Shown: in pieces, positions 26,915 to 61,228 of the stretch
Numbering within the stretch: the stretch's first letter is position 1
Layout of the letters: the number at the start of each line of letters is the position of its first letter
Virus record (IMG/VR): IMGVR_UViG_3300036715_000626
Coordinates: 141,016 to 205,015 of that record
Length of the DNA stretch: 64,000 nucleotides
Reading direction: 5' to 3' (one strand)
Program-made: the position numbers and the translations under genes
The notes under the pieces: generated by a model
The model's database searches: none
The model's input: only the letters and a program-made list of their open reading frames with translations
What the model was told of the DNA's origin: nothing

Positions 26915-26944
26915 GTACATAGCTAACAACTGTTAGCTATGTAC
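26915..26944. terminator. Hairpin terminator between convergent genes
   Basis: 14-bp stem gtacatagctaaca-ac-tgttagctatgtac. Confidence 0.75.
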
Positions 26945-27470
26945 TTTCTTTGGTTAATTGTTTATTTAAAAAAGCCTGAGCTTCTTTAAATTTGTCGACA
27001 GTATGTTTATTTTCTTCAAGCATACGAACCGCCGCTATTATTTTTGCTTTAACACTATCCGGTTTATCAATAGCGTTATATTTTTTCAGAATAGCATGTT
27101 CTTTAGTTATAGAACTTATCATAGCTTTTTTATCTTTTAATACCGAATATACTCGACTTTTATTAATAAGAAGCTCGCTTTTAGTATACTCTAAAAGCTT
27201 TACATATTTAAAAGCATTCTTAATTTTCTTAAGTGCGGAATCATGAGAAGCTTCATAAGATAAATATGCTTTATGAAGTTTCTCCAACTCTTCTATAGTA
27301 AAATTCGACATAGATGCTTTTTGGGTTATCCCGATCATAGGACACATATCATACACATTATACATAACATTTGAGTTAAGGTTGCCGTTAGTTGCTAAAT
27401 TAATAACTTCTAATTCTTCCTTATTCATAATAACATCAGTATACTTATTCTTCGGCTTTAACTCAGTCAT
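26937..27470 (-). CDS. Hypothetical basic helical protein
   Basis: 177 aa, AGGAG RBS, TATATTAT at 27503-27510. Confidence 0.6.
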   Translation of the reverse strand: MTELKPKNKYTDVIMNKEELEVINLATNGNLNSNVMYNVYDMCPMIGITQKASMSNFTIEELEKLHKAYLSYEASHDSALKKIKNAFKYVKLLEYTKSELLINKSRVYSVLKDKKAMISSITKEHAILKKYNAIDKPDSVKAKIIAAVRMLEENKHTVDKFKEAQAFLNKQLTKEST

Positions 27471-27598: not shown

Positions 27599-28093
27599 AT
27601 GAATATGACATACCAAGAATGGGTAACAGATCACAATGAAAAGGTGTCTAAAATATTAAATAAATTATCTTTACAAGGAATATCTACTATTGAAGAAATA
27701 GTAGATTACTTTGATTTTGATAGTATGGCTAAAAATGAACCTGAGTTTTGTCCACTTTATAAGGATAATATCAAATGCCACAGTATAGAAAAACTTAATT
27801 GTTATCACTGTGCGTGTCCTCACTTTGTTATTAACAAGAATCCTGCTACTAAAGGTAAGACTACCATAGCCAGTGTATGTAGTATTGATTCTCGCTTTAA
27901 AGATGAGTTCTACGAAAATCCAGATGAGAATAATGTAGTTAAAATACATTGTGATTGTACTAACTGCTACTTACCGCATAAGCAGTCTTATGTTTTAAAA
28001 TCATTACATAACCAACAAAAAGACTATATTAAATTAAAAGAGTGTGATTCATTATTAGATTACTTACGTGTAAATCAAATGAAGAAAAAATAA
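27599..28093 (+). CDS. Cysteine-rich small-domain (Zn-binding) protein
   Basis: FCPLY...CH....LNCYHCACP...CSI...DCTNCYLPH pattern, which I recall from a conserved Campylobacterota protein. Confidence 0.7.
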   Translation: MNMTYQEWVTDHNEKVSKILNKLSLQGISTIEEIVDYFDFDSMAKNEPEFCPLYKDNIKCHSIEKLNCYHCACPHFVINKNPATKGKTTIASVCSIDSRFKDEFYENPDENNVVKIHCDCTNCYLPHKQSYVLKSLHNQQKDYIKLKECDSLLDYLRVNQMKKK

Positions 28094-28124
28094 GACTACA
28101 TACCGCATCTGCGGTATGTAGTCT
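28093..28124. terminator. Hairpin terminator between convergent genes
   Basis: 15-bp stem agactacataccgca-tc-tgcggtatgtagtct. Confidence 0.75.
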
Positions 28125-28752
28125 AGTATTTAAACACGTAACCTGATGCATTTGACAAACTATCAATATCCGTAACGTTAATGTCTTGAGTACCGTCATT
28201 ATTAATGATGTATACTTTAAGATAGTCACCGCTCTTAATAATTTTAAAAACATATTTAGGTATATCAGAAGTTTTTAAACTACCATTAGAACCAAAAGTA
28301 CCAGACACCACAGTTGTCTTACCGAGGTCTAATGTTAAAGCACGTTCTTTTTCTTCTAATGATTTCCAGTTACCACGGTTATTAGAATAGTATTGTGGTA
28401 TCATGTTCGCCATAGAAAAACTCTCATATTGCGAGCTAGTAGTCGGCATATTCCCACACGGAGCTAAATGACCCTTATCGTACTCACTATTTACGAAGTT
28501 ATGTAATATATGTGTGTTAAGTTTAGGGTCCTCGTGAAATGCGTCCACTCTTGGTACATTATCTGCTTTACGTAAGTTAGCTGCTGTTAAGTCCTCAACG
28601 CTATAAACTGATCTATTTAGATCATTCGAGTAACAAGTTGTAAAATGTGTATATTTAACGCATTTAACTGTGTAAGGTGAAGTTATTGAGATAAACTCGC
28701 TAGCCAACATGTTACTATATATCAATAGTAAAAGAAAAAAGATCTTAATCAT
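28123..28752 (-). CDS. Exported DNA/RNA non-specific endonuclease (NucA/Serratia-type)
   Basis: Signal peptide, then YDKGHLAP, ESFSMANMIPQ, NRGNWKSLEE and IPKYVFKII. Confidence 0.9.
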   Translation of the reverse strand: MIKIFFLLLLIYSNMLASEFISITSPYTVKCVKYTHFTTCYSNDLNRSVYSVEDLTAANLRKADNVPRVDAFHEDPKLNTHILHNFVNSEYDKGHLAPCGNMPTTSSQYESFSMANMIPQYYSNNRGNWKSLEEKERALTLDLGKTTVVSGTFGSNGSLKTSDIPKYVFKIIKSGDYLKVYIINNDGTQDINVTDIDSLSNASGYVFKY

Positions 28753-47781: not shown

Positions 47782-50151
47782 TTAAACCACCTTTGTTAAT
47801 ATTGTTCGTAAACGTTTGATTCGGTTCTCAGCTTGTACTGCTACCATTTTTTCTTGGATAACTCTAAATGAGTAAGCAGTAGCTACTTTGTTATAATCCA
47901 CGGTCATACTCATTTCAACTTCACTAGCAATATAAGCTTGTTTAATAAGCTGCGTACCACCATCTATCACATGTGCGGTATAAGGTAATACAGTTGCTTC
48001 GATTAGTCCATTGTACATATGCTCAATTGTTTCCCAACCATCGGCAAATGGTGCTAAATAAATATTACTCACCCCAGTGTTACCAGAGGTATTAACCATA
48101 CCACCCGCTAAATAAATACCGGATTTAGTTACAAATAACGCACTGTTTGTTAATAATACTGGAAGATCACTAATCTGAGTTAACGTAATAACACTTCCAG
48201 GCGCTACTGGGTTGTTATCTGTATCTATATCGAAATAGTATACTGAATTAGTTATAGTGGTGCCGTTAGTGTTACCACCTATTAAGTATACTCTATTCTT
48301 AGTTTGAACTATACTGGCTATTACTTTATTAAAAGGTAATATTGCATATAGTGTCCACGAGCTTAACAATCCATTAGCATCGATAGTTGCTTTATACACA
48401 CTGTTAACGGTAGTATAGTTAGACATAGCCCCGCCAACTAAGAATACGTTATTACCAGAAACAAACATTCTAGAATAACCTAAAGCCGCAGGTAATGCAT
48501 TACTGTTAGTAGACCAAGAACCTAAATCTCCTGTAACAGGATCTATTGTAGCACGCATAATACTGTTTACTGCTTGCAAGATTCCGTTAACTGTTTGATC
48601 CCCACCTATAACATAGAGATGAGAATTAGTTATCAATAACTGTGTTTTGGCAATAGCTATAGGCATATTACCATATATTTCGAAACTACTTATAGTTCCG
48701 TCCGAAAGAATGGTAGCTTTTAAGATAGCTGCTAGCGCGGTACTACCATTAGCACCACCCATAATATACACATTATTCTTAATAATAGCTATTCTACCCG
48801 CATACATTGCTATAGGAATAGTTCCGTATAACGTAAAGTCGCCTATAATTCCATTAGTATCAATAGGCGCTGAATAAATAGTGTTTACAGGAACCTCGCT
48901 ACCAGCGCTTCCGCCTACAATGAACGCATGGTTATTAGTAGTAAATGTCGTACCGCCATAAAGATTTGCTGGTAAATTACCGATATCACCCCAAACTAAA
49001 TCAGTTACCGTAGAAGGTTGGTTTTGATTTTCATAATGATAATTGTTAAAGTATTGACCTTTACAATATAAACTGTTAGAACAGTTAATATTAGGATCAA
49101 TATAGGTAACTGTTCCTAAACTACCATCAATAGCTTCCCACCCATTATCCTGGGTGATATCATCAACATATACAGTAGTACCGGTTACATCGCCATAGAC
49201 AGTTACATCAGTAGCCGTGGATGTTAATCTTCTATTAAAGGTTCCTACTTTAGGAGACATCCCAAACACAGCTTTATCTGGTTCGACTGATATGTACACA
49301 GCAGGATCGATAGTGAGATAATTTGTAGCGGTCTTAGCTTTAAGGATAGGTAATGCAAAATATTCTGTTACAACACCAGCTATTACTGGAGATGTTTCAG
49401 TTTTTACTATATCGTATTGACCGTTACCGTTAACAACCACGCTACCTATTTTAACCATTACTTTGACACCATCTACAGTAACTAACGCATTATCGCCAGC
49501 AGTCAATGGCTCAGCAAGTGTGAGCAGTGTATCTGTATCGGTAACTAGTATATTAACAGGGTTAAGCATAAGCTGGCTTCTGTGTGTTACCCAATCTGTA
49601 TCTGTATCTTCTTGGTAATACTGATAAACTGCTATTTCACCATCAGTTGGCGATAGATCGGCGTCTAATCCGTTCTGCCATATCACATAGTCATCCAGAG
49701 TTTCCATCAGTTGTAAATTACGCACGGCGACAGTTGTCACAGTGCTAACTGTTTTACTAGACATCTTAGCCGATATGAACAATGATGTGTCAGTAGTACT
49801 TGTTACTGGGTGAAATACCACTGTCAATACACCATTATAAACAAAACCTGATATAACATCTTCATTCTGGGATTCAACAGTATATGTTATATCGTGTGAG
49901 TAGTTGGTAATAGTCACATTGACGCTACTACCTTCTGAATACTGTAGTGTATATGTAGACAGTGTAGGAGCATCTGTAACGCTAATAACAGAAAAAATAG
50001 CCAATGTTTCATTGACGTCTACATCAGTAATTAATATACCTGGCTTTACAGGAAAGTATAAGGTCTGGTTTGAAAGCATAGATGTTGGTGTTATAACAAT
50101 ATTCTTATCAGTAACAGCATCGTGCATCGGAATATTTGGTAGTGACGGCAT
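47782..50151 (-). CDS. Kelch-like beta-propeller tail/receptor-binding protein (paralog 3)
   Basis: Six Y/FxxGG...IYxAxIDxxGxxxxW repeats inside a scaffold shared with two neighbours. Confidence 0.78.
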   Translation of the reverse strand: MPSLPNIPMHDAVTDKNIVITPTSMLSNQTLYFPVKPGILITDVDVNETLAIFSVISVTDAPTLSTYTLQYSEGSSVNVTITNYSHDITYTVESQNEDVISGFVYNGVLTVVFHPVTSTTDTSLFISAKMSSKTVSTVTTVAVRNLQLMETLDDYVIWQNGLDADLSPTDGEIAVYQYYQEDTDTDWVTHRSQLMLNPVNILVTDTDTLLTLAEPLTAGDNALVTVDGVKVMVKIGSVVVNGNGQYDIVKTETSPVIAGVVTEYFALPILKAKTATNYLTIDPAVYISVEPDKAVFGMSPKVGTFNRRLTSTATDVTVYGDVTGTTVYVDDITQDNGWEAIDGSLGTVTYIDPNINCSNSLYCKGQYFNNYHYENQNQPSTVTDLVWGDIGNLPANLYGGTTFTTNNHAFIVGGSAGSEVPVNTIYSAPIDTNGIIGDFTLYGTIPIAMYAGRIAIIKNNVYIMGGANGSTALAAILKATILSDGTISSFEIYGNMPIAIAKTQLLITNSHLYVIGGDQTVNGILQAVNSIMRATIDPVTGDLGSWSTNSNALPAALGYSRMFVSGNNVFLVGGAMSNYTTVNSVYKATIDANGLLSSWTLYAILPFNKVIASIVQTKNRVYLIGGNTNGTTITNSVYYFDIDTDNNPVAPGSVITLTQISDLPVLLTNSALFVTKSGIYLAGGMVNTSGNTGVSNIYLAPFADGWETIEHMYNGLIEATVLPYTAHVIDGGTQLIKQAYIASEVEMSMTVDYNKVATAYSFRVIQEKMVAVQAENRIKRLRTILTKVV

Positions 50152-52418
50152 TACATACTCCTTTTAGTAAGATATGTTGTGATATTCCGTATAGCTGCTA
50201 ATGCAGTTTGTGGTAATGTAAGGGTTAAGTAGTTTTGTATATATCTAAACGACGGCAACGGCGTTATACTCGTAAAGGATACTTTAATATCTGTATTAGC
50301 ATAGCTAACTGACGCTTTAATATCTTTAACATAAGCAACTGCAGATAAATCATTACTAATACCTGTTCTAGTACTTAGTTCTGGTAGAACATAAGTTTTA
50401 TCAATATTATCAGTAATTACTGGCGTGGTTAATGCTTTCTTAAAACGATATGCTGTTTTACCTGCGGTATTGTCATTAAGACGGCAATCCCAGCCATCTA
50501 CTGTAGCTGAATAGTATTTTTCTAAGGTGTTACCGAAGATATATAATTTATTATTAATAATGAAAGTTTTCATTTTATTATCAGCAGTCCAAACACTCGT
50601 CATTAAGCTGAGATTATCGCTATCTAAAAGAATTGTTGGGGTTGTTAAATATCCGTCGGTATCTACTATAAATTTTATTATTTTAGTATGCCCATTTTCT
50701 ACAGCAGTTGAGTGTGTATGGTTTTGATAATAAACGGGTTTTCTAATAATCATATAGACATAATTACTAGTTACAATTACGTTAACATGTTTAATAGAGT
50801 ATATAGCGTTATTATCTACGAGTTCCATTCCTGAATATATCCAAGAACCTATACTTCCAGAACTATCAATGTCGCTGTAATATAAAAAATAATTTGCAGA
50901 ACCATTTATAATAACTTCAGAACCATCTCCAATAACTGCGTATACTCTGGATTTTGTTTTAAATATGTTATGTACGTAATAGTTATTCTGTCCTGTGAAT
51001 CCTGGTGCTACTACACTACCAACCAGAGCGTCTAAATAACCGTCATTAGTTAAACTGTAAAGACTACCACTCCACCCAGTTCCGTCAGTGTTACCGTAAC
51101 CATAAATGTATAATTTACCTTTAGTTACTACAAATGAAGGATCTGATAAACGTGGTGAAGTATTGTTAATAATCACCCAGCTACCAATATGTCCGTTAAT
51201 ATCGATAACAGCAGAGAGTAAATAACTTAATAACCCACCTGTAGACAATGTTCCTAGCTGACTAGTTATTATGTTGCTACCACCAGTTATATATATTTTA
51301 TCTTTAAGCTGTACAAGCGCCGCTTCATACATAGCTACTGGTAACCCAGACACACCGGTATCTTCTACCCAAGGGGTAGATGGTATAGATCCATCAGGAT
51401 TAAGCTCTTTGTAAAAAGAACGATTTGTAACAGCAGCTATCCATCCTTGTATCGGGTCGGTAAAATAGTTGTATGTATAAATTCCTCTAGTACAACCACC
51501 AAATCTGTATATACGACTACTGGTAACTATAGACATACTGTCAGCATAACCAATATCAGTACTTGACGTTATTGTAGGTAAATTTGGTAACGTTGAATCA
51601 TATGTCACCGGATCTATGGTTTTTAACAAATTAGTATTGTTATAGTTATCATAATGAGTAAATTCACAAGGATAACCTAAAAACGCATTGGTATTGTAAC
51701 TTGAATTATCGTTAACTTTAGCGAGATTTAAATTACCCATTGTGGTGTGTACCGCAACATCAGTTCCTACCGGAATTTGTATAGAGGTATTAACATATGT
51801 AGCATCTTCTGATAAAAACACATTATTAGCAGCCAGTACAACATCATTTTGATAGGTCACCCAATCAGTTTCACCTACTCCTTGAGCAGCTACCGATGTT
51901 TCTACAACACTAGCACTTGAATTCAAATCGGTATCAACTCCATTTTGCCAAGTAACCATATTGTCAGCAACGGCAGGAATAACTAGATTATTAATAACGA
52001 TTACATTTTGGCTACTTTGTATTTTACCAGATTCAGTACATGTGATACTTATAGTTCCAGTGGTATCAGTTCGCACTGGTAAGAATGTTACATGGATAAT
52101 ATCGCCAGCTCTGCTAGTGGTAACTAATCCTGATGTGTTGAATATGCTATATTGATTACCTGGAATATAGTTAGTGATAGTTATGTCGACAGTACTGCCT
52201 TCATAGTACGTAAGTGTGTTTGTATTTACTGTAGGTTCGCCTGTAATTATTCCATAACTAAGAGCTGTTAACATGTCATTGAGATCATCTTGAACTAGCA
52301 TAGTACCAGTTCTAGCAGGTAATTGTAATAGGGTGTCTACTGTAATATCAGTATCTGGTTTCAGTTCTATTTTTTTACCAGTCGAAGAATCGACTAGCTT
52401 TATAGTAGAGTTTGGCAT
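50151..52418 (-). CDS. Kelch-like tail protein (paralog 2)
   Basis: Shared N-terminus (LQLPARTG, YYEGS, WQNG, GETDWV), degenerate Kelch-like repeats and a shared FRxIQ...TYLTKR end. Confidence 0.75.
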   Translation of the reverse strand: MPNSTIKLVDSSTGKKIELKPDTDITVDTLLQLPARTGTMLVQDDLNDMLTALSYGIITGEPTVNTNTLTYYEGSTVDITITNYIPGNQYSIFNTSGLVTTSRAGDIIHVTFLPVRTDTTGTISITCTESGKIQSSQNVIVINNLVIPAVADNMVTWQNGVDTDLNSSASVVETSVAAQGVGETDWVTYQNDVVLAANNVFLSEDATYVNTSIQIPVGTDVAVHTTMGNLNLAKVNDNSSYNTNAFLGYPCEFTHYDNYNNTNLLKTIDPVTYDSTLPNLPTITSSTDIGYADSMSIVTSSRIYRFGGCTRGIYTYNYFTDPIQGWIAAVTNRSFYKELNPDGSIPSTPWVEDTGVSGLPVAMYEAALVQLKDKIYITGGSNIITSQLGTLSTGGLLSYLLSAVIDINGHIGSWVIINNTSPRLSDPSFVVTKGKLYIYGYGNTDGTGWSGSLYSLTNDGYLDALVGSVVAPGFTGQNNYYVHNIFKTKSRVYAVIGDGSEVIINGSANYFLYYSDIDSSGSIGSWIYSGMELVDNNAIYSIKHVNVIVTSNYVYMIIRKPVYYQNHTHSTAVENGHTKIIKFIVDTDGYLTTPTILLDSDNLSLMTSVWTADNKMKTFIINNKLYIFGNTLEKYYSATVDGWDCRLNDNTAGKTAYRFKKALTTPVITDNIDKTYVLPELSTRTGISNDLSAVAYVKDIKASVSYANTDIKVSFTSITPLPSFRYIQNYLTLTLPQTALAAIRNITTYLTKRSM
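51339..51414. repeat. 76-bp direct repeat, copy 1 (73/76 identical to 53551..53626)
   Basis: Direct sequence comparison by eye. Confidence 0.9.
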
Positions 52419-52419
52419 G

Positions 52420-54609
52420 TTAACCTCGTTTTGTTAAATATGTTCTGATTCTAATAATTACACGCACAGCATTTTTAATAATAACGTTATGCTGCATAGC
52501 TCTAAAACTATTGATAGGTTTATAACCTGCATAATTAATTGTAATCGTATTATTAATTTTAAATGCATCAGCCGTGATAGGTGTTACAGTGTCAATAACG
52601 GAATAAATAAATCTGGCACTAAATGTACCTACTATATCCATAGCTGTTTTAACGCTAAGCTTAGGTAATAAGTATATAGTATTAGGCGTATTTGTTAATA
52701 CCGGTAATGTTTCAAGTTTCTTAAACTTATATTGGCTGGTAAGTGCTGTAGTATCGTTTAATCTACTATTCCAACCATCTACTGTTATATGTAAATATTG
52801 ACTCATATGTTCGTCAAATAGTATAAAAGTGTTATTAATAATAAATACACCACTCCACCATTTAACACTTAATGACCATATACTATTAAATGGTATTGTA
52901 GTAAGTGTACCTAACATGATATTGGTCCCCAGGATTCCATTACTATCAATACTCGACCTACTTAATTTAGTGTAACCGCCATTCGCATCGTGTATTATAA
53001 AATAAACATAATTATTAAATACTAAAGTAGCTAACCCGAAACTACCAGTAGCATACCCAGTAGTACCATAAACACTTGCTGTACCTAATGGTTGTGAAAT
53101 CCACGCACCTATACTCCCATCAGAATTAATTACAGCATAGTAACCATCTGTTATGTATAGTCTAGATTTAGTTTTGAATAAGTAACCTTTCGATTGACTA
53201 CCTGTGTTAGGTAATGTAATAGCGACAAATGATCCCAAGGTACCATCAGTGTTGATATCAAATTTAAAACCCACTCTAGTACTAGAAATAAAGTTACCGG
53301 GAAAAGCTATCAATAACCCAGATAGATACATTTTATTCTTAGTAATAACTATACTAGGTTCTGATATATTAGGAGATACTCCGCTAGAAACCCATGCGCC
53401 AACATGACCGTTAATATCAATAGGAGCTTTATAAATAGTGTTATTAATACCACCACCTGTATAATTTCCTGATGATGTAGTAAAATTATTGCCACCAACC
53501 AAATAAACAGTGTTTTTTAACACTATTAAGCCGAACCCATTTAGTCCTGTTGGTAACCCAGACACACCGGTATCTTCCATCCAAGAGGTAGATGGTATAG
53601 ATCCATCAGGATTAAGCTCTTTGTAATAGGATTTATTTATAGAAGCGCCGACACCGTTAAACACATAGGTATACCCACCAAACTTATATATCCTACTTGA
53701 TGTAATAATAGACCCTGGATTAGCCCATAACGCATTATCTTGTGTATAATATGAATCGCTAGTATTATTAACTGGCGCTGTTAAAATAGCATTATCATAA
53801 TTAACTGGGTCTATAGTTTTTAGTAGGTTATTATTCCAGTAATTGTCGTAATGACTAAATTCGCACGGATACCCTATATATGCTCCAGTAGTAGCATTTA
53901 CGACATCTCCTACCTTAACCACACCAGTATCTACTACAAGCAAATCGTCACCGTTAACAACTGGATCAGTTACAGTTATATAAACGCCATCATCTGCCGT
54001 GAATATATTGTCGCCGGCAATCATTTCTAGTTTATCAGTATACATAACCCAATCAGTCTCGCCATCACCTTGTAACGCAATACCCGTTGAGATTACATCT
54101 AGACCGGATCCTAGATTGGCGCTTGTACCATTCTGCCACATAACTAAATCGTCGGTAACTTCGGCTATATTCATATTGGTAATCGCTACCATAGTTTTAT
54201 AACTTTCAAGTTTACCAGGAGCTGTCATTTTAACAACTAAGTTACAGCTAATATCGATATTTGTAGGAAGAAACGTCAAATAAATATTAGCTCCAGTTCT
54301 CGATACTTGAACGATCCCAGTAGTATCAGCATAAATATTAAAAGTATTGGCAGCATCATAGTTACTAATGGTTACTATAGCTACACTTCCTTCATATTGC
54401 GAAAGAGTTGCTACCGATAGTATAGGTCCAGCAGTTACCATGTTATTATTAAAAGAAGAAATAGCTGCCGTTAAATCGGCTCTTGTTAAGAGTATCCCGT
54501 TTCGAGTAGGCAGCCGTAATGTTAAATCGTTTGGTACTTGATCTGGTAACTGTATCTCCAATAGTTTACCATTTATTTTATTCCGAAAAGTTATTGATTT
54601 AGAAGCCAT
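52420..54609 (-). CDS. Kelch-like tail protein (paralog 1)
   Basis: Same scaffold; GYPCEF.HYDNY and YKELNPDGSIPST segments are shared with paralog 2. Confidence 0.75.
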   Translation of the reverse strand: MASKSITFRNKINGKLLEIQLPDQVPNDLTLRLPTRNGILLTRADLTAAISSFNNNMVTAGPILSVATLSQYEGSVAIVTISNYDAANTFNIYADTTGIVQVSRTGANIYLTFLPTNIDISCNLVVKMTAPGKLESYKTMVAITNMNIAEVTDDLVMWQNGTSANLGSGLDVISTGIALQGDGETDWVMYTDKLEMIAGDNIFTADDGVYITVTDPVVNGDDLLVVDTGVVKVGDVVNATTGAYIGYPCEFSHYDNYWNNNLLKTIDPVNYDNAILTAPVNNTSDSYYTQDNALWANPGSIITSSRIYKFGGYTYVFNGVGASINKSYYKELNPDGSIPSTSWMEDTGVSGLPTGLNGFGLIVLKNTVYLVGGNNFTTSSGNYTGGGINNTIYKAPIDINGHVGAWVSSGVSPNISEPSIVITKNKMYLSGLLIAFPGNFISSTRVGFKFDINTDGTLGSFVAITLPNTGSQSKGYLFKTKSRLYITDGYYAVINSDGSIGAWISQPLGTASVYGTTGYATGSFGLATLVFNNYVYFIIHDANGGYTKLSRSSIDSNGILGTNIMLGTLTTIPFNSIWSLSVKWWSGVFIINNTFILFDEHMSQYLHITVDGWNSRLNDTTALTSQYKFKKLETLPVLTNTPNTIYLLPKLSVKTAMDIVGTFSARFIYSVIDTVTPITADAFKINNTITINYAGYKPINSFRAMQHNVIIKNAVRVIIRIRTYLTKRG
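53551..53626. repeat. 76-bp direct repeat, copy 2
   Basis: tggtaacccagacacaccggtatcttc...ggtagatggtatagatccatcaggattaagctctttgtaa. Confidence 0.9.
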
Positions 54610-54663: not shown

Positions 54664-54698
54664 TAACAGTACTACCGACATAGTCGGTAGTACTGTTA
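54664..54698 (-). terminator. Hairpin closing the signalling cassette
   Basis: 16-bp stem taacagtactaccgac-ata-gtcggtagtactgtta overlapping the porin stop. Confidence 0.75.
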
Positions 54699-55886
54699 GA
54701 AATCTGAATACCATTGTAGCATAATAGAACTTGATGATGTAACACTATCTTTAATAGTATCATTATTACCATATTCAGGAGTAAATCCTTTATAAGTACT
54801 AACTCCATCGGAATCATAATGACAGTATCTTAGTTTAAGTAGGTTATCTTTATTTAGCGATACTCCTATACTGGCGTTAATAGTTGTTCCTATATCAGCA
54901 TACGACAACAGCGATATCGGTTTACCGGCTAATAAACTATGGTATCCAGGAGATTTGTAAGCGTACTCGATTCCGAATGACATATCCTTATTCCAGATGA
55001 CGTCATCTACTTCTTTTTTAAATCCAGCAGTTATACTATAACCAGCTGTGTCATAACCACCAAAGTAATAGCCGTCATCTTCAAAAGGTTTCTTAGTAGG
55101 AGAGAGTTGTTCATTGTCACCAGATGATTTAGTTAATACCACACTACCATAATAAGTAAATCCAGTATTCTCTTCGTCACTATATGTAAAAGCTCCTCCA
55201 AGTATATCTGAAGCTATAATAGGGTTACTATTGATAACTTGTTCTATCTTGTAATAGTTAACTTCTAAATACAGATTATCCAACTGATGTTTATCTATAA
55301 TAAAATAACCACCGGTATTTTTATAACTATCGTAGGAAACCGGACCGCTACTAGCATCATAATCGTAGAATGATTTAAAATATTTATCAAAGTTTATCTT
55401 ACCACCGCTTAAAGTATGTTCCTTAGTTGGTTTATAGGTAAGTATGATTCCTTGCATTGTTACATCGTTTACATTATACAATCCGTTACCTAAACGAGTA
55501 CCATTATATGCCATTTCATAAAGAGTGCCTTTTCTAAAAGGAAACAAACCAACTGACACAGAAACATCTTTAAAGATGTTATATGTATAATACAGTTCAT
55601 TCAGATAGATAGCTTTCATCTTAGTGACATCATCTTTAACAATGCTGTTGTATACAGAATTATCTGTATAATATATACCTGGTGAAAAAGTAAACTTACT
55701 ATTACAAAAGTAGAAATCGTTATTAACAACAACGTCTACTGTATCAATATGCGAAGATATGTTCTTCCCATTCTCTTTATAAGTAGATAACGCGCTTGTT
55801 AGCTCTGCATTACCAGACATGTCGTATTTGAAATCAACAGGGTATAAAAAAGAGAAACATAAAACCATAAAAACGATGAACTTCAT
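54696..55886 (-). CDS. Outer-membrane beta-barrel protein / putative porin (DUF3373-like)
   Basis: Signal peptide, alternating aromatic/polar strands, IYLNELYYTY...VSVG.FP and SFGIEYAYKS.GY motifs, and a C-terminal Phe signature (MLQWYSDF). Confidence 0.78.
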   Translation of the reverse strand: MKFIVFMVLCFSFLYPVDFKYDMSGNAELTSALSTYKENGKNISSHIDTVDVVVNNDFYFCNSKFTFSPGIYYTDNSVYNSIVKDDVTKMKAIYLNELYYTYNIFKDVSVSVGLFPFRKGTLYEMAYNGTRLGNGLYNVNDVTMQGIILTYKPTKEHTLSGGKINFDKYFKSFYDYDASSGPVSYDSYKNTGGYFIIDKHQLDNLYLEVNYYKIEQVINSNPIIASDILGGAFTYSDEENTGFTYYGSVVLTKSSGDNEQLSPTKKPFEDDGYYFGGYDTAGYSITAGFKKEVDDVIWNKDMSFGIEYAYKSPGYHSLLAGKPISLLSYADIGTTINASIGVSLNKDNLLKLRYCHYDSDGVSTYKGFTPEYGNNDTIKDSVTSSSSIMLQWYSDF

Positions 55887-56173
55887 CGTGGATCCTCCAA
55901 GTCGGTATTTTCAAAACTTCTATAACTAACAGAGGTTACTTCTTTATCGATACACTCTTTTAGTAGATGTTTATCTTTCACAGATAAGGGTAATTTTGTA
56001 TACAATTGTAATTTATTATTATTATAGGCCCGTAACCAGCCTTTCGGCTTTTTTATATTCATGTCAATACCGTATTTATTAAATACATTTTCGCAGTATT
56101 GTTCTGGTTGGTCTGGGTATATGTTAGTTGCTATTAAACAGTTAAAAAATAATAATAGGATAAATTTATTCAT
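55883..56173 (-). CDS. Small exported (periplasmic) protein
   Basis: Signal peptide MNKFILLLFFNCLIA, two mature Cys, ATGA-coupled to the porin gene. Confidence 0.7.
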   Translation of the reverse strand: MNKFILLLFFNCLIATNIYPDQPEQYCENVFNKYGIDMNIKKPKGWLRAYNNNKLQLYTKLPLSVKDKHLLKECIDKEVTSVSYRSFENTDLEDPR

Positions 56174-56193
56174 CTAGCATTCCATTAAAGTAT

Positions 56194-57594
56194 TTAATCA
56201 TCGCGTCTCGGTTTAACAGGAATAGTTATTTTGAACAACGTCCCATCTTTAGACGTATTTATCAGCTTAACATCCCCACCGGAATTAACAGCGATTCCTT
56301 TTGTAAATGATAGACCAGCTCCTCTTGGGACAATACTGTCCTTAAGTATACCAATCTTAACCATGAATTTAAGGAACCAAGATCTATTATTAATATTTTC
56401 ACCTTGCATAGTTTTAGTAGTATACCCATAGCTAAATATTTCATTTGTTTCTACTATATTACCAGCTCTATCTCTGATACCTCTACCGTTATCGGAGAAA
56501 TAAATATTAAGTTTATACTTACTTGGTAATAACTCAGCTCCGATAGTGATGACCGTAGCTTTAGCTTCTATACTATTAGTAGTATGAGCATGTATTATAT
56601 TTAATAGATCGCCATTAGTCATACCATAACCGACAGCATAATTCTTTAATATATCGAGGTTATTATAAACCACGGTTACTTTATTAACCTTCAAACTGTT
56701 GTTTGTTTTTATAATATTATCTATAATACTATGTATCGCTGTATTACCGTTACTGTATTTTATATGTTTACTGGCAGCCATTTGATTTAATGGTGCTTCT
56801 AAACGTTCTATAGCAAACTTCATCTTTAAGAAATAGTTCTTAGCTATATCGTCATTAATTAGATCTTTATTGCGTAAAACACAATCAGCACATTTTGTAG
56901 TATCTACATCAGTTTCAGAGGTGCATAGATTACATATCCCGGACTTACTATATGAACATGGGAATAGTGTAGAATATAAGTCCCATACTAATGTTTTAAT
57001 AAGAGCTACTGGCATACCCATTTCATGGTGCGCAGATTCTGACATATCTCTCTGTAGTTTATTTTCTAATCCTATCTTATACGACGTTTTCTCAATAGCG
57101 GCATTACGGTTTTCTATGTATAGCTGTTTAAGAAATATGTAGCTATACAATAAAAAAAATATGAACGAGTTTAAATACATAATATTAAGAAATGTATCTA
57201 TGTAACGCTTATCGTTAACAACGATCGTATGATCATTATATCTAAGTACGGTCTTAAGATCAGCAGTAAAACTTCCCAAATATTTAGCCTGATCTGGTTG
57301 AGCAGGAGTTAATAATAAATACCCATCTTTACCTAAGATGTAATTCATATTACCATCTGTAATAGTTTCACATGACACTACACTACACATAAGACTAAGG
57401 TCTTCTCCTTCTCTACTTACAATAGTAGAGAGCTTCTTAATATAATCAGTCATAGTTCCTTTATAAATAGAATGCACTGTAGATACTTCTATTATTAGGA
57501 AAATTATAAAAAACATTATATAGTACTTAATAAATTTATATATTGTTTTGCTATTAAAAAACAGCATGAACTTATCAATGTCTATTTGTAACAT
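56194..57594 (-). CDS. Membrane-bound sensor histidine kinase
   Basis: Two TM helices flank a ~95-aa periplasmic domain. H-box ESAHHEMGMPV, N-box NIIHAHTTNSIEA, G1 FSDNGRGI, F-box IFSYGYTTK and G2 RGAGLS...GGDV...GTLFKITIP are all present. Confidence 0.93.
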   Translation of the reverse strand: MLQIDIDKFMLFFNSKTIYKFIKYYIMFFIIFLIIEVSTVHSIYKGTMTDYIKKLSTIVSREGEDLSLMCSVVSCETITDGNMNYILGKDGYLLLTPAQPDQAKYLGSFTADLKTVLRYNDHTIVVNDKRYIDTFLNIMYLNSFIFFLLYSYIFLKQLYIENRNAAIEKTSYKIGLENKLQRDMSESAHHEMGMPVALIKTLVWDLYSTLFPCSYSKSGICNLCTSETDVDTTKCADCVLRNKDLINDDIAKNYFLKMKFAIERLEAPLNQMAASKHIKYSNGNTAIHSIIDNIIKTNNSLKVNKVTVVYNNLDILKNYAVGYGMTNGDLLNIIHAHTTNSIEAKATVITIGAELLPSKYKLNIYFSDNGRGIRDRAGNIVETNEIFSYGYTTKTMQGENINNRSWFLKFMVKIGILKDSIVPRGAGLSFTKGIAVNSGGDVKLINTSKDGTLFKITIPVKPRRDD

Positions 57595-57598
57595 GACC

Positions 57599-58228
57599 TT
57601 ACTCGTACAAGAAACTGTTTATACGGGATACTCTATCAGAGTTTTTATTCATATAGTAGTTGTTAATATTTAAACCGGTTACTGTTTCAAATTTATTAAT
57701 ATAATACATAATATCCGCATTGCGGCGGTTCATGGTATGCGCAGTACTAAATAGTATTTTAGCATTAGGGTTCTTATCTAGAATAAGAATAGCGATGTCC
57801 ACACCATCGAATTCTACATAAGCTCCATCTTGCAGCTTAACGATATAACCAAGTGTTATATCTAAGATAGCGTAATCGACTTTACCATTTTCAATACTAC
57901 AATACTTATGTGCCATTAACCCTGCTCTAGGATCAAGACATTTAACCAAAGTGAAATCGTTTAAAACATCCTTCTGGTACAAACGTTTTATATTTTTAAA
58001 ATCTACTGAATAAAGTATGTATGTTTCTGGAATATCATCCATAATAAATAGATATGGTTTGTCACAGCCTACACAAGATACTTCTGCTGAGGGAACACTA
58101 GTATAGTCAATAGTTGTATCATATACTGTTTTAGCATGTGTTTCTGTTATAGCTTCCAGTACTGGAGATATAGCCGAAGTATTATCTTTCTTAAATAGTC
58201 TGGTTAATAGCTTTATATATTTTAGCAT
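57599..58228 (-). CDS. Stand-alone response regulator receiver (CheY-like) protein
   Basis: LFIMDD acidic pair, phosphoacceptor in DYAILDITL, FDGVDIA, ILFSTAH and YMNK; no DNA-binding output domain. Confidence 0.88.
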   Translation of the reverse strand: MLKYIKLLTRLFKKDNTSAISPVLEAITETHAKTVYDTTIDYTSVPSAEVSCVGCDKPYLFIMDDIPETYILYSVDFKNIKRLYQKDVLNDFTLVKCLDPRAGLMAHKYCSIENGKVDYAILDITLGYIVKLQDGAYVEFDGVDIAILILDKNPNAKILFSTAHTMNRRNADIMYYINKFETVTGLNINNYYMNKNSDRVSRINSFLYE

Positions 58229-58229
58229 T

Positions 58230-58670
58230 TTAGTTTCCTGTAAAGATTGATCGAATCATATCTAGTATTTCTTTTGTCAATGTTGGATTTATGTAATGTA
58301 TACCTACCAATATAACTATTAAAATACCGATAGAAATTATAATTTTACCGCTATCCGGAAAATCACTAAAAAACCCTTTACTAGGTTTAACAACAACAGG
58401 TGCAGCTTCAGAATTAACATTCTTTTTTAAACTAGAAAGCATTTCAATGTTAGCATCTATTAATTTATTTAAAGTTACTATTTGACTAAACTTCATAGTT
58501 TGCATAGAGGATTTATAATTACTATGTAACAATATTAATGTTTCGAATACTTCATCAGTTACATCTTTTAATTGTACTAAACGTGTAAAGTCATCATTGT
58601 TATCATTTTCAATATGAGTGTCATATATTTCATCTTTTAGAGCAAGCAATCTTTTTTCTACATTATCCAT
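58230..58670 (-). CDS. Helical protein with C-terminal transmembrane anchor
   Basis: About 105-aa helical N-domain, then IIISIGILIVILVGIHYI; AGGGAG RBS; stop 1 nt from the receiver start. Confidence 0.7.
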   Translation of the reverse strand: MDNVEKRLLALKDEIYDTHIENDNNDDFTRLVQLKDVTDEVFETLILLHSNYKSSMQTMKFSQIVTLNKLIDANIEMLSSLKKNVNSEAAPVVVKPSKGFFSDFPDSGKIIISIGILIVILVGIHYINPTLTKEILDMIRSIFTGN

Positions 58671-58719
58671 CTTTTTCTCCCTTAAAATCGTTAAATAATC
58701 AATAAATACTCAAAGATTA

Positions 58720-58750
58720 ATACAACACATAGCATAGCTATGTGTTGTAT
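58720..58750 (-). terminator. Hairpin upstream of the signalling cassette
   Basis: 14-bp stem atacaacacatagc-ata-gctatgtgttgtat; no clear U-tract, so read-through is possible. Confidence 0.6.
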
Positions 58751-58756
58751 CATATG

Positions 58757-59062
58757 TTATTTAGTAACGGTTTTCTCGATGTTAGATAAAACATTTGTTA
58801 TTGGGTTATCCGTACTAGCACTTGTTGATGTGTAGAATCCGTACGCTGCTGCTAGTGCTGCACATATTGTACCATAGAGTACATTGGTTGCTCCGTCTGG
58901 TTTACCCCATGCAAATATCATAACAATACCAATAGTAGATATTACCCATGTTACAAGGATAGTTAAAAGGACTGCTTTTCTAAATCGTGTAGGTTCACCT
59001 TCAGTCCATAGTATAAACTTACGAACATAGGTATTTTCGTTTTTAATAGTTTCTTCTTCCAC
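58757..59062 (-). CDS. Holin-like two-TM membrane protein
   Basis: 101 aa, GTG start with AAGGA RBS; RFRK, then TM1, a short turn, TM2 ending AYGFY, and a polar tail. Confidence 0.55.
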   Translation of the reverse strand: MEEETIKNENTYVRKFILWTEGEPTRFRKAVLLTILVTWVISTIGIVMIFAWGKPDGATNVLYGTICAALAAAYGFYTSTSASTDNPITNVLSNIEKTVTK

Positions 59063-59112
59063 ACAGTATCCTTAATTTTAAAATAATCACTAAAGATCAA
59101 AAAAATAACCTA

Positions 59113-59138
59113 GTATGAAGGTCATATGACCTTCATAC
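59113..59138 (-). terminator. Perfect 26-bp palindrome overlapping a stop codon
   Basis: gtatgaaggtcat|atgaccttcatac with an A-tract at 59099-59105. Confidence 0.7.
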
Positions 59139-59625
59139 CATTTTTAAGATTAAAGATCATGATTAGCGCATTATTAATCACGATCTCTATTACAGGGGGT
59201 TTCCCGAAGTCATAATCGACTAACTCTTTCTCCGGTACTTGTTTAGAACCCGTATTAATCGGGATCGTGTACATACCGGGATACTCACCTCTGGTAATGC
59301 TACCATTGGCAAGATATAGAACATTTATACCATCAGTGTATAAATCATTCTCTTCGGTGATTTTAATAACATCATTACTAGCACTACTAGTAAAATGTTC
59401 TATAAGTTCCCCTAAGTGACCTATTCGGTAAATATCGTGGTTAAAGATATTTTCATCTTTAGCTAAACGCTTACCGGAATTAATATAAAACAAAATACTA
59501 CCAACACTTCCATAACGTGCTGTATACAAATTGGTATAGAACACCGATCCAAAGATACGATGTTCTACTTGCTTAATTAGGACAATACTGTCTATCTTAT
59601 TTTGTTCTACTACAAATATGGACAT
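59122..59625 (-). CDS. Hypothetical protein
   Basis: Start reassigned to ATG 59625 (MSIFVVEQ) behind GAAGGAGG; a CATATTAT variant lies at 59656-59663. Confidence 0.65.
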   Translation of the reverse strand: MSIFVVEQNKIDSIVLIKQVEHRIFGSVFYTNLYTARYGSVGSILFYINSGKRLAKDENIFNHDIYRIGHLGELIEHFTSSASNDVIKITEENDLYTDGINVLYLANGSITRGEYPGMYTIPINTGSKQVPEKELVDYDFGKPPVIEIVINNALIMIFNLKNGMKVI

Positions 59626-59687
59626 ACTGTCCTCCTTCACTCTTAAACTATTTTTATAATATGTATTCAAAAAAAATTGAAACCTAT

Positions 59688-59715
59688 AGTAGTAACCGTA
59701 TATACGGTTACTACT
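59688..59715 (-). terminator. Perfect 28-bp palindrome
   Basis: agtagtaaccgtat|atacggttactact with an A-tract at 59669-59676. Confidence 0.75.
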
Positions 59716-61228
59716 TAGTACGCACCATTTTAGGATAATCCATAAGAATATATGTTTTTGCTTTAGGCTTAATAATCTTCGTTCGATCATGATGCATTTT
59801 AACTTGTTTAGGTATATCCTTAGAATAAAGATAACCATAGTATACTTCACGACCATCATCAAGTTTTCTTAACCTTCCAACATTTTGCAAGTTAGCTTGG
59901 ATACTACTTATTAAAACTGTTTGTAATACAGCAATAAGATTAGGTATATCAAGAGCCGTACCAGCACTTAGAGTAGTACTAAAACAGATATCACTTTCTA
60001 ATACGTTTACTAACGGGTCATCTTCCACATATCTTCGTACGTCAAATTGTTTATACTTACGATTAAAATGATTTGCTAGGACAGTACACATACGTATAGA
60101 CGCTGCGAAAATCAGAATCCGATCGCCCGGTTTCCTACGACTAATATATAAGTCCGCTATATAGTAATCGATCATGTTAATATACTCTCGCAAGAATACA
60201 CTATTGCGCATAAGCGTTTGTTCGAATAAGATATGGTTATAACCCTTAACCCCCATGAACCTAATTCCGCGTAACGATTCAATCTTATAGTTAATAGCAA
60301 TAACGTTAGCATATTTATCATACTCTACGATATTACTTATACGATTTGTAGCAGGAAATAGATTCATATACATTTTATTCACATCTGGTTGATTACTAAG
60401 TAACGTTGCAGATGAACCTATAAGGTATAATGGGTTAAGATATAAAATACATTTGAAGATACTATAAAATTCTTCATGAGTCTCATCATTATAGATAATG
60501 CCTATACCAAGAGTTTCAAGTATCTTATCGGGAGTTATCGGAAAAGTATAGCTATGACATTCCTCAAAATCGGTAATAAGATTCATCATGGTTCTACTAC
60601 TAAAAATAACAAACTTATACGAAGTATTTTTATCTTCAATAAGATGTAATAAACTTTCTTCACCCTGTACGATATAAATATCGTTATCAGTTACATCAGT
60701 ATACTTCTTAAGATCGATTATCCATTTCTCGATATACTTAGGTCTTAATAATAGACCTGTTCGCATATTGAGTTTAGCAACGGCAGCCATCGCTATGACC
60801 GATTTACCGCGACCTGTCTGTAGGTCAATAAGTGTTATTTTAGTGGCGTTTTCAGCTACTAATGCGTTTATATAAATATGTTGATAATCTCTAATAGTAA
60901 AAGACGAGTTAACTTTAATGTTAATGGGTTTAATATTAAAATTCTTACGATATTCCACATGTATCATATCTCTAGTGACATAATGGCTACCAAGTAACAG
61001 CATGAAATCTTTTAAATTCATTATACTGAATCTATACGTATTGGTATGTGGTAAATGTGACATGAATATCTTATCACGCTGTCGTATATTTCGTTTAAGT
61101 ATTTTATCATATACAAAATCATAAGTAGACAATTCGTTTATCATAATGTTTAAAACACTATTCAGTTTTTCATCAAGCAGCTTAACGGTGAATGATGTGT
61201 TAAATATTACTATTTCTAAGCGTTTCAT
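59711..61228 (-). CDS. Superfamily 2 helicase (phiKZ gp75-like)
   Basis: IRDYQ Q-motif, LQTGRGKS, DETH, SAT, SAGTALDIPNL and QNVGRLR. Confidence 0.88.
   Translation of the reverse strand: MKRLEIVIFNTSFTVKLLDEKLNSVLNIMINELSTYDFVYDKILKRNIRQRDKIFMSHLPHTNTYRFSIMNLKDFMLLLGSHYVTRDMIHVEYRKNFNIKPINIKVNSSFTIRDYQHIYINALVAENATKITLIDLQTGRGKSVIAMAAVAKLNMRTGLLLRPKYIEKWIIDLKKYTDVTDNDIYIVQGEESLLHLIEDKNTSYKFVIFSSRTMMNLITDFEECHSYTFPITPDKILETLGIGIIYNDETHEEFYSIFKCILYLNPLYLIGSSATLLSNQPDVNKMYMNLFPATNRISNIVEYDKYANVIAINYKIESLRGIRFMGVKGYNHILFEQTLMRNSVFLREYINMIDYYIADLYISRRKPGDRILIFAASIRMCTVLANHFNRKYKQFDVRRYVEDDPLVNVLESDICFSTTLSAGTALDIPNLIAVLQTVLISSIQANLQNVGRLRKLDDGREVYYGYLYSKDIPKQVKMHHDRTKIIKPKAKTYILMDYPKMVRTK

Follow-up and report, generated by a model that had tools for sequence, protein, structure and literature searches.

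A group of uncultured giant phages carries its own bacterial-style sensor kinase and partner protein, usually together with a private outer-membrane barrel and a small periplasmic protein. We examined this cassette in a distant phiKZ-like jumbo phage contig, in a window of 64,000 nucleotides from the IMG/VR record IMGVR_UViG_3300036715_000626, that also encodes the major capsid protein, the virion RNA polymerase beta subunit and a helicase. Five tightly packed genes on the minus strand, which we refer to as A to E, lie between two strong hairpins (Table 1), with gaps of 1, 4 and 20 nt between the first four genes and an overlap of 4 nt between the last pair. A first-pass annotation had described the five genes, their spacing, the key residues of each protein and the enclosing hairpins from the sequence alone, and each of these details was confirmed by our analysis.

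Table 1. Positions of the cassette genes and associated elements within the window
Feature	Position	Strand	Size	Description
Upstream hairpin	58720-58750	-	16-bp stem	Terminator of the preceding 101-aa gene, marking the 5' boundary of the cassette's transcription unit; -21.3 kcal/mol, z -5.5
Candidate promoter element	58693-58706	-		TTTATTGATTATTT, between the hairpin and the ribosome-binding site of gene A
Second copy of the candidate element	59081-59094			Before the 101-aa gene
Gene A	58230-58670	-	146 aa	Tail-anchored helical protein; N-terminal cytoplasmic helical domain with an ETLILLHSNYK-type motif, one C-terminal membrane segment within residues 103-132, short tail
Gene B	57599-58228	-	209 aa	Single-domain response regulator; N-terminal amphipathic basic helix, variable linker, predicted receiver domain (about residues 57-209)
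Gene C	56194-57594	-	466 aa	Sensor histidine kinase; first membrane segment, periplasmic domain of roughly 90 aa with a conserved C-x4-C (C70, C75), second membrane segment, dimerisation helix with H190, Cys4 insert (C213, C221, C235, C238), ATP-binding domain
Gene D	55883-56173	-	96 aa	Small exported periplasmic protein; signal peptide, conserved W-x-R and Cys framework
Gene E	54696-55886	-	396 aa	Predicted outer-membrane beta-barrel, a divergent relative of DUF3373; signal peptide, about 16 strands, C-terminal ...Y-S-D-F signal
Downstream hairpin	54664-54698	-	16-bp stem	Intrinsic terminator with a T-run, its stem starting at the stop codon of gene E; -25 kcal/mol, z -8.7

The hairpins are of a type that punctuates this genome. 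In the 10-kb neighbourhood of the cassette the scan found 10 terminator-like hairpins against 2.9 expected, and across the window there are 54 short-loop inverted repeats, many of them at gene boundaries. A hairpin equivalent to the upstream one, followed by a T-run, lies upstream of gene A in most of the related loci. A TGATTAAT-like motif is found at the same position as the candidate promoter element in about 10 related loci, but as it is not enriched across the window we have little confidence in this assignment.

Protein C is a real but very divergent sensor histidine kinase. The residues of the H, N, G1, F and G2 boxes are conserved, with H190, P195, N340, A344, D368, G370, G372, R424, G425 and G427 invariant in 28 homologues, and the catalytic motifs are also intact in the most divergent modules, at the related loci L018 and L020. 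Pfam HATPase_c hits 28 of 28 family members with a best E-value of 1.5e-12, though the window's own kinase scores below the cut-off (22.5 against 26.4 bits), and HisKA is only seen weakly, in 9 of 28 members with a best E-value of 0.014. A profile search of the PDB hit the catalytic domains of WalK, ZraS, FixL and CheA. The Thr/Asn of the HisKA phosphatase motif is a Met in the window protein and varies across the family.

Protein B gave no hit to Response_reg in the window, and only 14 of 44 family members are hit, weakly, by this profile. The AlphaFold2 model, however, is confident (pLDDT 86.8) and shows a (beta-alpha)5 fold, for which the top 50 Foldseek matches in the PDB are all receiver domains or proteins containing one, including those of CheY, Spo0F and PorX. 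The acidic pair (D64/D65), the phospho-acceptor (D123), the Ser/Thr (S162/T163) and the Lys (K195) sit at the canonical strand ends, and D65, D123 and K195 are invariant in 44 sequences. The domain has a beta-hairpin insert after the phospho-Asp, and there is no output domain.

The model of protein E (pLDDT 87.2) is an outer-membrane barrel that matches AlgE, Omp32, chitoporin, PorB and OprP in Foldseek with E-values of 1e-13 to 1e-10, and F396 at its C-terminus is invariant. The first-pass annotation had suggested DUF3373 for this protein. While the window protein and its 19 closest relatives do not hit this family at all, the suggestion holds in that distant members of the barrel family score above the Pfam gathering threshold. 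For protein D, two of the four framework cysteines are lost together in the window and at the related locus L005, which implies two disulfides, and its stop codon overlaps the start of E in 8 of 10 loci. The signal peptides of D and E are conserved in homologues. Homologues of A, with the same C-terminal membrane segment, come first in the module in all loci, but no significant family or PDB match was obtained for A, and no structure or homologue was found that informs the function of either A or D.

To investigate whether the cassette is host cargo, a possibility that the first-pass annotation had set as a test of its own reading, we looked for it in other genomes. The same five-gene order recurs in 17 independent metagenomic phage contigs from JGI, ENA, NCBI and Logan assemblies, at 29-61% kinase identity. 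The cassette is syntenic with the virion RNA polymerase and helicase genes. No family member was found in 185,579 species genomes or in 50,697 GenBank phage records. The identities of A, B and C co-vary with the adjacent virion RNA polymerase subunit (Spearman 0.61-0.69), whereas the divergence of D and E does not track the phage backbone (Spearman about 0 and 0.19, with only six genomes). The only clue to the host is one relative binned with an Arcobacter MAG.

Nine further contigs carry A-B-C alone, the D-E pair being cleanly missing between the kinase and the same downstream tail-fibre-like gene. The core is therefore the anchor, receiver and kinase, and kinase and receiver are adjacent in every one of the 26 distinct contigs. 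Every barrel homologue whose context was examined lies directly behind D and the kinase, including three that were chosen only by distant barrel similarity, so that D-E is an accessory pair that was never seen away from the kinase. Most of the kinases without D-E keep the periplasmic domain, which suggests that the kinase can sense without them, while the one kinase that has lost this domain, at the related locus L028, also lacks D-E.

The interpretation in the first-pass annotation was that the cassette supplies a component for each compartment, letting the infected cell sense an external cue such as superinfecting phage, a lysis product, a metal or redox state, and that it is a domesticated phage module rather than recent cargo. 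This is partly supported. The five protein assignments and the long residence in phages hold, but our data do not show that the five proteins act as one envelope-spanning chain, the five-part composition is not obligatory and the cues remain proposals only. Porin-like barrels as such are also not unprecedented amongst metagenomic phage proteins.

The explanation we favour, with moderate confidence and without biochemical evidence, is a phage-owned two-component signalling operon, inherited vertically within a deep clade of uncultured phiKZ-like jumbo phages of a diderm host. We take as established, from sequence and structure prediction, that the five genes form one hairpin-bounded unit, that C has every catalytic residue of a HisKA-type sensor kinase with a periplasmic domain between two membrane segments, that B folds as a receiver with all five phosphorylation-site residues and no output domain, that E is an outer-membrane barrel of about 16 strands, that D is a secreted, disulfide-bonded mini-protein and that A is tail-anchored in the inner membrane. 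How these would work together is inferred. After infection E would be inserted into the host outer membrane by the BAM machinery, with D made in step with it through translational coupling. D would act in the periplasm as an accessory co-sensor for the C-x4-C domain of the kinase, the cue either entering through E or being reported from it. C would autophosphorylate on H190 and transfer the phosphate to D123 of B. As B has no DNA-binding domain but has a conserved amphipathic N-terminal helix, it would act by protein-protein contact at the membrane, where the most economical partner is the always co-inherited A. In this view D-E is an optional input front end that about one third of lineages lack, and the finding of A-B-C alone but not of D-E alone is the asymmetry expected of an accessory input to the kinase.

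An alternative that is possible but less likely is that two independent devices are merely co-transcribed, with A-B-C a self-contained membrane-sensing core and D-E a separate outer-membrane function that feeds no signal to the kinase, such as masking a receptor against superinfection, taking up a nutrient or remodelling the envelope. The nine contigs without D-E, the retention of the periplasmic C-x4-C domain in most of their kinases, the failure of D and E to follow the RNA polymerase subunit and the position of the module next to receptor-binding-type genes would all be consistent with this. On the other hand, the barrel family was never found away from the kinase in 17 loci, the C-D-E order and close spacing are conserved, with overlaps in several loci, and the kinase at L028 has lost its periplasmic domain in the absence of D-E. 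It seems unlikely that the pair exists to interfere with host signalling, with the kinase phosphorylating host response regulators, or the lone receiver draining phosphate from host kinases or binding a host target such as the flagellar switch or a protease adaptor, so as to reprogramme the infected cell. Although B resembles the single-domain receivers CheY and Spo0F, and a ClpX-like gene sits divergently next to one distant module, the kinase and receiver diverge together as cognate pairs do, and the family is far from any cellular kinase found, which argues against mimicry of a particular host partner. Recently captured host cargo or an assembly chimera is effectively refuted. Two-component systems are typical bacterial genes and the GC content of the cassette (0.30-0.32) is slightly below the window mean of about 0.35, but the recurrence in independent assemblies, the synteny, the genome's own hairpin punctuation and the absence of a cellular counterpart among the species genomes are all against it. 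It is very unlikely that B is a cREC-type enzyme, the divergent receiver fold described in jumbo phages that processes cyclic nucleotides or ADP-ribose derivatives in counter-defence (PMC7824862). The window protein has a weak Pfam cREC_REC hit (E 0.17) and two of 44 homologues are hit (E 0.0086 or weaker), but Response_reg hits 14 of 44, no NAD/ADP-ribose enzymes lie in the module, and cREC is stated in that paper never to be found with histidine kinases, whereas B is always next to one.

The closest known systems are classical bacterial two-component systems in which a HisKA-type membrane sensor kinase is paired with a single-domain response regulator of the CheY, Spo0F, DivK or CpdR type. 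The kinase architecture, the receiver fold and residues and the adjacency of the two genes are alike, but the phage system is encoded by lytic-type jumbo phages and was found only in phage-like contexts, with no family member in the species genomes scanned, the window proteins are too divergent for Pfam thresholds, the kinase has the Cys4 insert in the dimerisation-helix loop, and the receiver has the beta-hairpin insert, the N-terminal amphipathic helix and an Asn rather than a Pro following the Lys. In the Vibrio chitin-sensing pathway, the chitoporin ChiP, the periplasmic binding protein CBP and the kinase ChiS follow the same logic of an outer-membrane channel, a periplasmic accessory protein and the periplasmic domain of an inner-membrane kinase, and other kinases such as LuxQ and TorS are regulated by the periplasmic partners LuxP and TorT. 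Protein D, however, has only about 70 mature residues and is not a Venus-flytrap binding protein, there is no sequence relationship, no ligand is known and D-E is optional. In the Rcs and Cpx envelope-stress systems (RcsF threaded through outer-membrane barrels; NlpE and CpxP with CpxA) a small, disulfide-bonded envelope protein is likewise associated with an outer-membrane barrel and reports to an inner-membrane kinase, but D has no conserved lipobox and so is not an outer-membrane lipoprotein, there is no IgaA-like or phosphotransfer intermediate and there is no homology. Members of DUF3373 (Pfam PF11853; TCDB 1.B.62, putative bacterial outer-membrane pore-forming proteins predicted to have 18 strands; PMC4827864) share with E a large barrel fold and a C-terminal aromatic residue, though the window protein and its closest relatives are shorter, at about 390 aa against about 505 aa, and every context examined was a phage module.

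Other phage-encoded sensors, namely RI and holin T in T4 lysis inhibition, the arbitrium AimR system and the VqmA quorum receptor of phage VP882, also let the virus condition its programme on a signal from the periplasm or from outside the cell. None of these is known to use His-Asp phosphotransfer or to bring its own outer-membrane protein, and most act on transcription or on a holin, whereas the output here is inferred to be at the membrane, with lysis timing, a response to superinfection and envelope state as candidates for what the system serves. The presence of this cassette suggests that these lytic viruses monitor the envelope of the cell they infect.

The IMG/VR contig IMGVR_UViG_3300036715_000626, from which the window derives, is 205 kb long. 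The window encodes a phiKZ-type major capsid protein (phrog_3231, E 3e-140), and its best deposited relatives are only 27-37% identical and include Ralstonia RP12/RP31, Burkholderia FLC9 and Escherichia phage Goslar. A virion RNA polymerase beta subunit, a DnaB-like helicase and a ribonucleotide reductase are also present, so that this is a distant, uncultured phiKZ-like jumbo phage. The five minus-strand ORFs, which we call A to E in order of transcription, lie exactly where the first-pass annotation had placed them, with gaps of 1, 4 and 20 nt and one 4-nt overlap, and the observation therefore held. The unit is bracketed by two stable hairpins of a type that punctuates the whole genome. A scan of the surrounding 10 kb found 10 terminator-like sites against 2.9 expected, and there are 54 short-loop inverted repeats in the 64 kb of the window. 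These long, near-perfect hairpins, with stems of 13-27 nt and loops of 0-3 nt, mark many gene boundaries, often between convergent or tandem genes. After the upstream hairpin and its T-run a TGATTAAT-like motif recurs 25-35 nt before the ribosome-binding site, at the same position upstream of gene A in about 10 related loci. This may be a promoter element of this phage group, though it is not enriched across the window.

Coordinates of features of the module and its surroundings in the window and in related contigs (numbered L)
Source	Coordinates	Strand	Feature
Window	47782-54609	-	Three tandem tail-fibre-like paralogues directly downstream of the cassette (789, 755 and 729 aa)
Window	54664-54698		Downstream hairpin, 16-bp stem and T-run, -25 kcal/mol (z -8.7)
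Window	56194-57594	-	Gene C, predicted sensor histidine kinase
Window	57599-58228	-	Gene B, predicted receiver
Window	58720-58750		Upstream hairpin, -21.3 kcal/mol (z -5.5)
Window	58693-58706 and 59081-59094	-	Candidate promoter motif
Window	58757-59062	-	Gene for a 101-aa membrane protein, in its own unit bounded by hairpins 59113-59138 and 58720-58750
Window	59122-59862	-	246-aa ORF with a TTG start
Window	59711-61228	-	Helicase gene (505 aa)
Window	6081-6125, 7858-7889, 19785-19818, 26902-26957, 28086-28131, 59113-59138		Examples of long hairpins at gene boundaries
L014	12946-17984		Single protein of about 770 aa downstream of the module, followed by a diversity-generating retroelement
L015	11790-16956		As for L014
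L017	13631-18717		As for L014
L002	14632-15366		Second outer-membrane-family protein (DUF481)
L017	19603-20364		Second outer-membrane-family protein (DUF481)
L030	6399-7010		Cys-rich protein between receiver and kinase
L048	4724-5320		Cys-rich protein between receiver and kinase
L028	6458-7462		Kinase without a periplasmic domain
L011	6891-7346 and 15647-16543		Acb1 (anti-CBASS) gene immediately upstream of the module and actin-like ALP_N/MreB-like gene nearby
L018	4008-5249		Divergently oriented ClpX-like AAA+ gene
L005	5323-7890		Helicase enlarged to 855 aa with a LAGLIDADG insertion

For the kinase, C, the window protein alone gives only a sub-threshold match to Pfam HATPase_c (E 1.6e-4, 22.5 bits against a cut-off of 26.4). 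A search of 5.8 billion proteins found 28 homologues of the same length at 29-61% identity, all of them metagenomic. In their alignment the putative phospho-acceptor His190, which lies in an H-box of the form E-S-x-H-H-E-M-G-x-P on the dimerisation helix, is invariant, as are Pro195, Asn340, Asp368, Gly370, Gly372, Arg424, Gly425 and Gly427, while Glu191 and Phe387 are each present in 27 of 28. The H, N, G1, F and G2 boxes are thus all represented. All 28 members match HATPase_c (best E 1.5e-12), whereas HisKA is matched only weakly, by 9 of 28 (best E 0.014). The family profile also matches the catalytic domains of WalK, ZraS, FixL and CheA in the PDB at E values of 6e-7 to 1e-5. From the N-terminus the protein has a first membrane segment, a periplasmic domain of about 90 residues with a C-x4-C pair (Cys70 and Cys75, in 27 of 28), a second membrane segment, the H-box helix, a C-x7-C-x(9-13)-C-x2-C insert in the loop of the dimerisation hairpin and the ATP-binding domain. 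Each of the four insert cysteines is present in 25-27 of the 28 homologues, though the insert is missing in the deepest-branching modules. The Thr/Asn of the HisKA phosphatase motif is Met in the window protein and varies across the family.

The receiver, B, is not recognised by any library when the window protein is used alone. It has no Pfam Response_reg hit, the best match being cREC_REC at E 0.17, and a profile of eight homologues found nothing in the PDB by sequence. Of 44 family members 14 match Response_reg weakly (best E 5e-4) and only 2 match cREC, so that membership rests on fold and residues rather than on sequence score. With a 44-sequence alignment AlphaFold2 gave a model with a pLDDT of 86.8, above 90 through the core, in which five strands (59-64, 93-98, 119-123, 157-162 and 192-194) alternate with five helices and a small beta-hairpin is inserted after strand 3. 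The 50 best Foldseek matches in the PDB are all receiver domains or proteins containing one, including Spo0F, CheY, ArcA, DrrB/DrrD, PorX and ComE, with target-normalised TM-scores of 0.53-0.72 for stand-alone receiver-domain chains. The residues of the predicted phosphorylation site fall where the (beta-alpha)5 fold requires them, with Asp64/Asp65 at the end of strand 1, Asp123 at the end of strand 3, Ser162/Thr163 at the end of strand 4 and Lys195 at the end of strand 5. Asp65, Asp123 and Lys195 are invariant in the 44 sequences. There is no output domain. The roughly 55 residues before the receiver are variable, except that the first 15 or so form a basic amphipathic helix in nearly all members, with a mean hydrophobic moment of 0.53 against 0.37 for composition-matched shuffles and 89% of sequences above their shuffle mean. 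We infer that this is a membrane-binding or docking helix.

Barrel E has a hydrophobic N-terminus and an invariant terminal Phe in a Q-x-Y-x-D-F ending. The AlphaFold2 model (pLDDT 87.2) has about 16 long antiparallel strands, and Foldseek matches it to AlgE, Omp32, chitoporin, PorB and OprP/OprO at E values of 1e-13 to 1e-10 with a TM-score of about 0.5, so that E is a generic large porin-like barrel. Pfam detects nothing in the 20 closest members. An exhaustive profile search of 1.84 billion representatives, however, found 102 relatives, and three of the distant ones match DUF3373 at E values of 7e-5 to 4e-9, two of them above threshold. DUF3373 is TCDB family 1.B.62, a putative 18-strand pore former (PMC4827864). 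The suggestion of DUF3373 in the first-pass annotation was therefore right at superfamily level, E being related to DUF3373 without being a scoring member. Related phages encode a second outer-membrane-family protein (Pfam DUF481, E 8e-14) a few genes downstream of the module, so this clade carries more than one envelope protein.

The small protein D has a signal peptide, and its mature part carries a four-cysteine framework. The two inner cysteines are both absent in the window and in the related contig L005, and this paired loss is the signature of two disulfides and hence of a periplasmic location. The D stop overlaps the E start in 8 of 10 loci, which suggests coupled translation. An outer-membrane lipoprotein of the RcsF, NlpE or o-spanin type was considered for D but rejected, since only one of 10 homologues (that of L012) has a plausible lipobox and Cys12 of the window protein is not conserved. 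Gene A encodes a helical protein with a conserved E-T-L-I-L-L-x-S-N-Y-K-type motif and one membrane segment near the C-terminus. This position, together with the absence of a signal peptide, rules out an i-spanin. A histidine phosphotransfer protein was also rejected, because the only candidate residue, His49, is Gln or Tyr in four of nine homologues. Weak matches of A to nickel superoxide dismutase (E 0.0025 and 0.063) were taken as helical-composition noise, and PDB profile matches to CorA and syntaxin were not significant. Searches of PHROGs and NCBIfam gave nothing significant for any of the five proteins.

To investigate the distribution of the module, gene contexts were recovered for homologues found through the kinase, the receiver or the barrel. 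The order A-B-C-D-E, with very similar protein sizes, recurs in 17 distinct contigs from JGI, ENA, NCBI and Logan assemblies, several of which are 100-250 kb long. Three of these were picked only because their barrel was a distant match to E (E 4e-27, 1e-28 and 9e-13), and each barrel again lay behind a D-like gene, a kinase and a receiver. Two of the three also have a same-sized gene in the A position, which in L020 matches the A profile and in L018 does not, although it has a C-terminal membrane segment. All five proteins of the divergent L020 module match the family profiles, while L018 matches for B to E only, at E values from about 1e-4 (D) to 4e-43 (C). Both keep the catalytic motifs of the kinase, including the H-box. 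The flanks are phage-like, with multi-subunit RNA polymerase fragments, helicases, a DGR cassette, Acb1, T4-type RNA ligase and homing endonucleases, and in several loci the module sits, as in the window, between the RNA polymerase and helicase genes and a tail-fibre-like gene. Across six genomes the pairwise identities of A, B and C follow those of the adjacent RNA polymerase subunit (Spearman 0.61-0.69). No family member was found in one genome from each of 185,579 bacterial and archaeal species, where the kinase profile gave only two partial ATP-domain hits to ordinary kinases, in a Flavobacteriales MAG and in Ureibacillus. DNA and protein searches of 50,697 deposited GenBank phage genomes gave no match for the cassette, kinase, receiver or barrel. 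The cassette is therefore an old, vertically inherited phage module and is neither host cargo nor an assembly artefact.

Of the genes around the module, the three paralogues downstream in the window have Kelch beta-propeller hits, and the 729-aa and 755-aa proteins are 37% identical. In related phages the retroelement that follows the single protein at this position comprises bAvd, a reverse transcriptase and DUF4376, and the N-terminal 90 residues or so are shared. These look like two alternative ways of diversifying a receptor-binding protein. The 101-aa protein just upstream of the cassette has one strongly hydrophobic segment (residues 28-54) and possibly a second and could be holin-like; it has one weak PHROG hit of unknown function. 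A link to lysis genes is not conserved, however, since a homologue of this protein was found only in L005 and M15 peptidases lie upstream in L002 only. The 246-aa ORF overlaps the 3' end of the helicase gene by about 150 nt, and the real gene probably starts at an internal Met.

The first-pass annotation had read the cassette as a single five-part envelope-spanning unit resident in the phage, and this interpretation is only partly supported. Nine further contigs carry A-B-C, or B and C with an extra membrane protein between them, and have no D or E within the sequence available, which was 6-10 kb on each side. In L009, L028, L039, L043 and L046 the kinase is followed directly by a large protein of about 770-830 aa (cut short by the contig end in L046), in the position that tail-fibre-like proteins of similar size occupy behind E in several complete modules. 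Only for L028 was this homology shown, its 829-aa protein being homologous to the gene that follows E in L012. D-E thus appears to come and go as a pair. Most ABC-only kinases keep the periplasmic C-x4-C domain. One of the nine, that of L028 at 334 aa, clearly lacks it and has two adjacent membrane segments, though a single case is not decisive for a link between loss of D-E and loss of this domain. In two ABC-only lineages, L030 and L048, the extra protein is Cys-rich, of about 200 aa, with a membrane segment at each end, and precedes a shorter kinase of about 395 aa. It may be an alternative, inner-membrane-anchored co-sensor.

The simplest reading is that A-B-C is the functional core and that D-E is an accessory input device that depends on it, since E-family barrels were never seen without the kinase. 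It is also possible, though we consider it less likely, that D-E is an unrelated outer-membrane function that shares the transcript. Identities of D and E do not follow the phage backbone, although this sample comprised only six genomes. That B is a cyclic-phosphate processing receiver (cREC) of the kind found in jumbo phages is not supported, as cREC is linked to NAD/ADP-ribose or cyclic-nucleotide enzymes and never to histidine kinases (PMC7824862), whereas B is adjacent to a histidine kinase in all 26 distinct contigs and the module holds no NAD-processing genes.

What the analysis establishes is that the genes form one hairpin-bounded unit, long conserved within phages, with a kinase that is complete in its catalytic residues and has a periplasmic domain, a receiver that is likewise complete and has no output domain, an outer-membrane barrel, a disulfide-bonded exported mini-protein and a tail-anchored protein. 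The rest is inference from sequence and models: that E is inserted by the host BAM machinery, that D acts in the periplasm between E and the kinase sensor domain, that C autophosphorylates on His190 and passes phosphate to Asp123, and that phosphorylated B acts at the membrane through its amphipathic helix, probably on A. We hold this model with moderate confidence, and are more confident of the narrower claim that C and B form a functional phage-borne kinase-receiver pair. The closest functional analogies, which are not homologies, are pathways that run from a porin through a periplasmic partner to a kinase, such as Vibrio ChiP-CBP-ChiS and the envelope-stress sensors RcsF/outer-membrane protein and NlpE/CpxP-CpxA. 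A DNA-binding output would be awkward if this phage, like its better-known relatives, encloses its DNA in a protein shell, and this is consistent with a bare receiver that looks membrane-directed. A diderm host is implied by the barrel with its BAM-type C-terminus and by the periplasmic disulfides. The only taxonomic hint is weak and does not concern the window's own contig, namely that one related 165-kb phage contig was binned into an NCBI MAG labelled Arcobacter sp.

Literature searches on phage-encoded two-component systems, including histidine kinases in jumbo phages and in Chimalliviridae and phage-encoded kinase, regulator and porin combinations, retrieved no description of such a module. 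Searches of the 2021 comparative review of 224 jumbo phages turned up only the kinase-independent cREC domain, and the 2020 huge-phage survey makes no mention of two-component systems, histidine kinases, response regulators, porins or the outer membrane. Porin-like proteins do exist among metagenomic phage proteins, so the barrel alone is not new, and the other parts likewise belong to known kinds. What is new is their combination, its confinement to phages and its age, together with the Cys4 insert in the dimerisation loop of the kinase, the membrane-directed bare receiver, the dedicated tail-anchored partner and the optional barrel and mini-protein front end. The work also defines a new branch of DUF3373-like barrels and two protein families (A and D) with no known relatives.

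Two-component systems are the main sensory device of bacteria and are normally regarded as host property. In this clade a complete kinase-receiver pair has been kept by lytic-type jumbo phages across divergence down to about 30% identity, with its own accessory membrane proteins and no cellular counterpart that we could detect. A more speculative view, which we regard as doubtful but not excluded, is that a deep clade of virulent, phiKZ-like jumbo phages runs a private trans-envelope sensory pathway, made up of its own outer-membrane channel, periplasmic co-sensor, His kinase, membrane-associated CheY-like regulator and tail-anchored effector. Such a pathway would let the infected cell report extracellular or envelope conditions and would adjust a late decision such as lysis timing or the exclusion of superinfecting phage, and it would be the first His-Asp phosphorelay shown to serve a virus's own decision-making. 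If the pair is active, large phages carry dedicated environmental sensing during infection, and what a virulent phage needs to know while replicating becomes directly testable, because the kinase, the receiver and their catalytic residues are defined.
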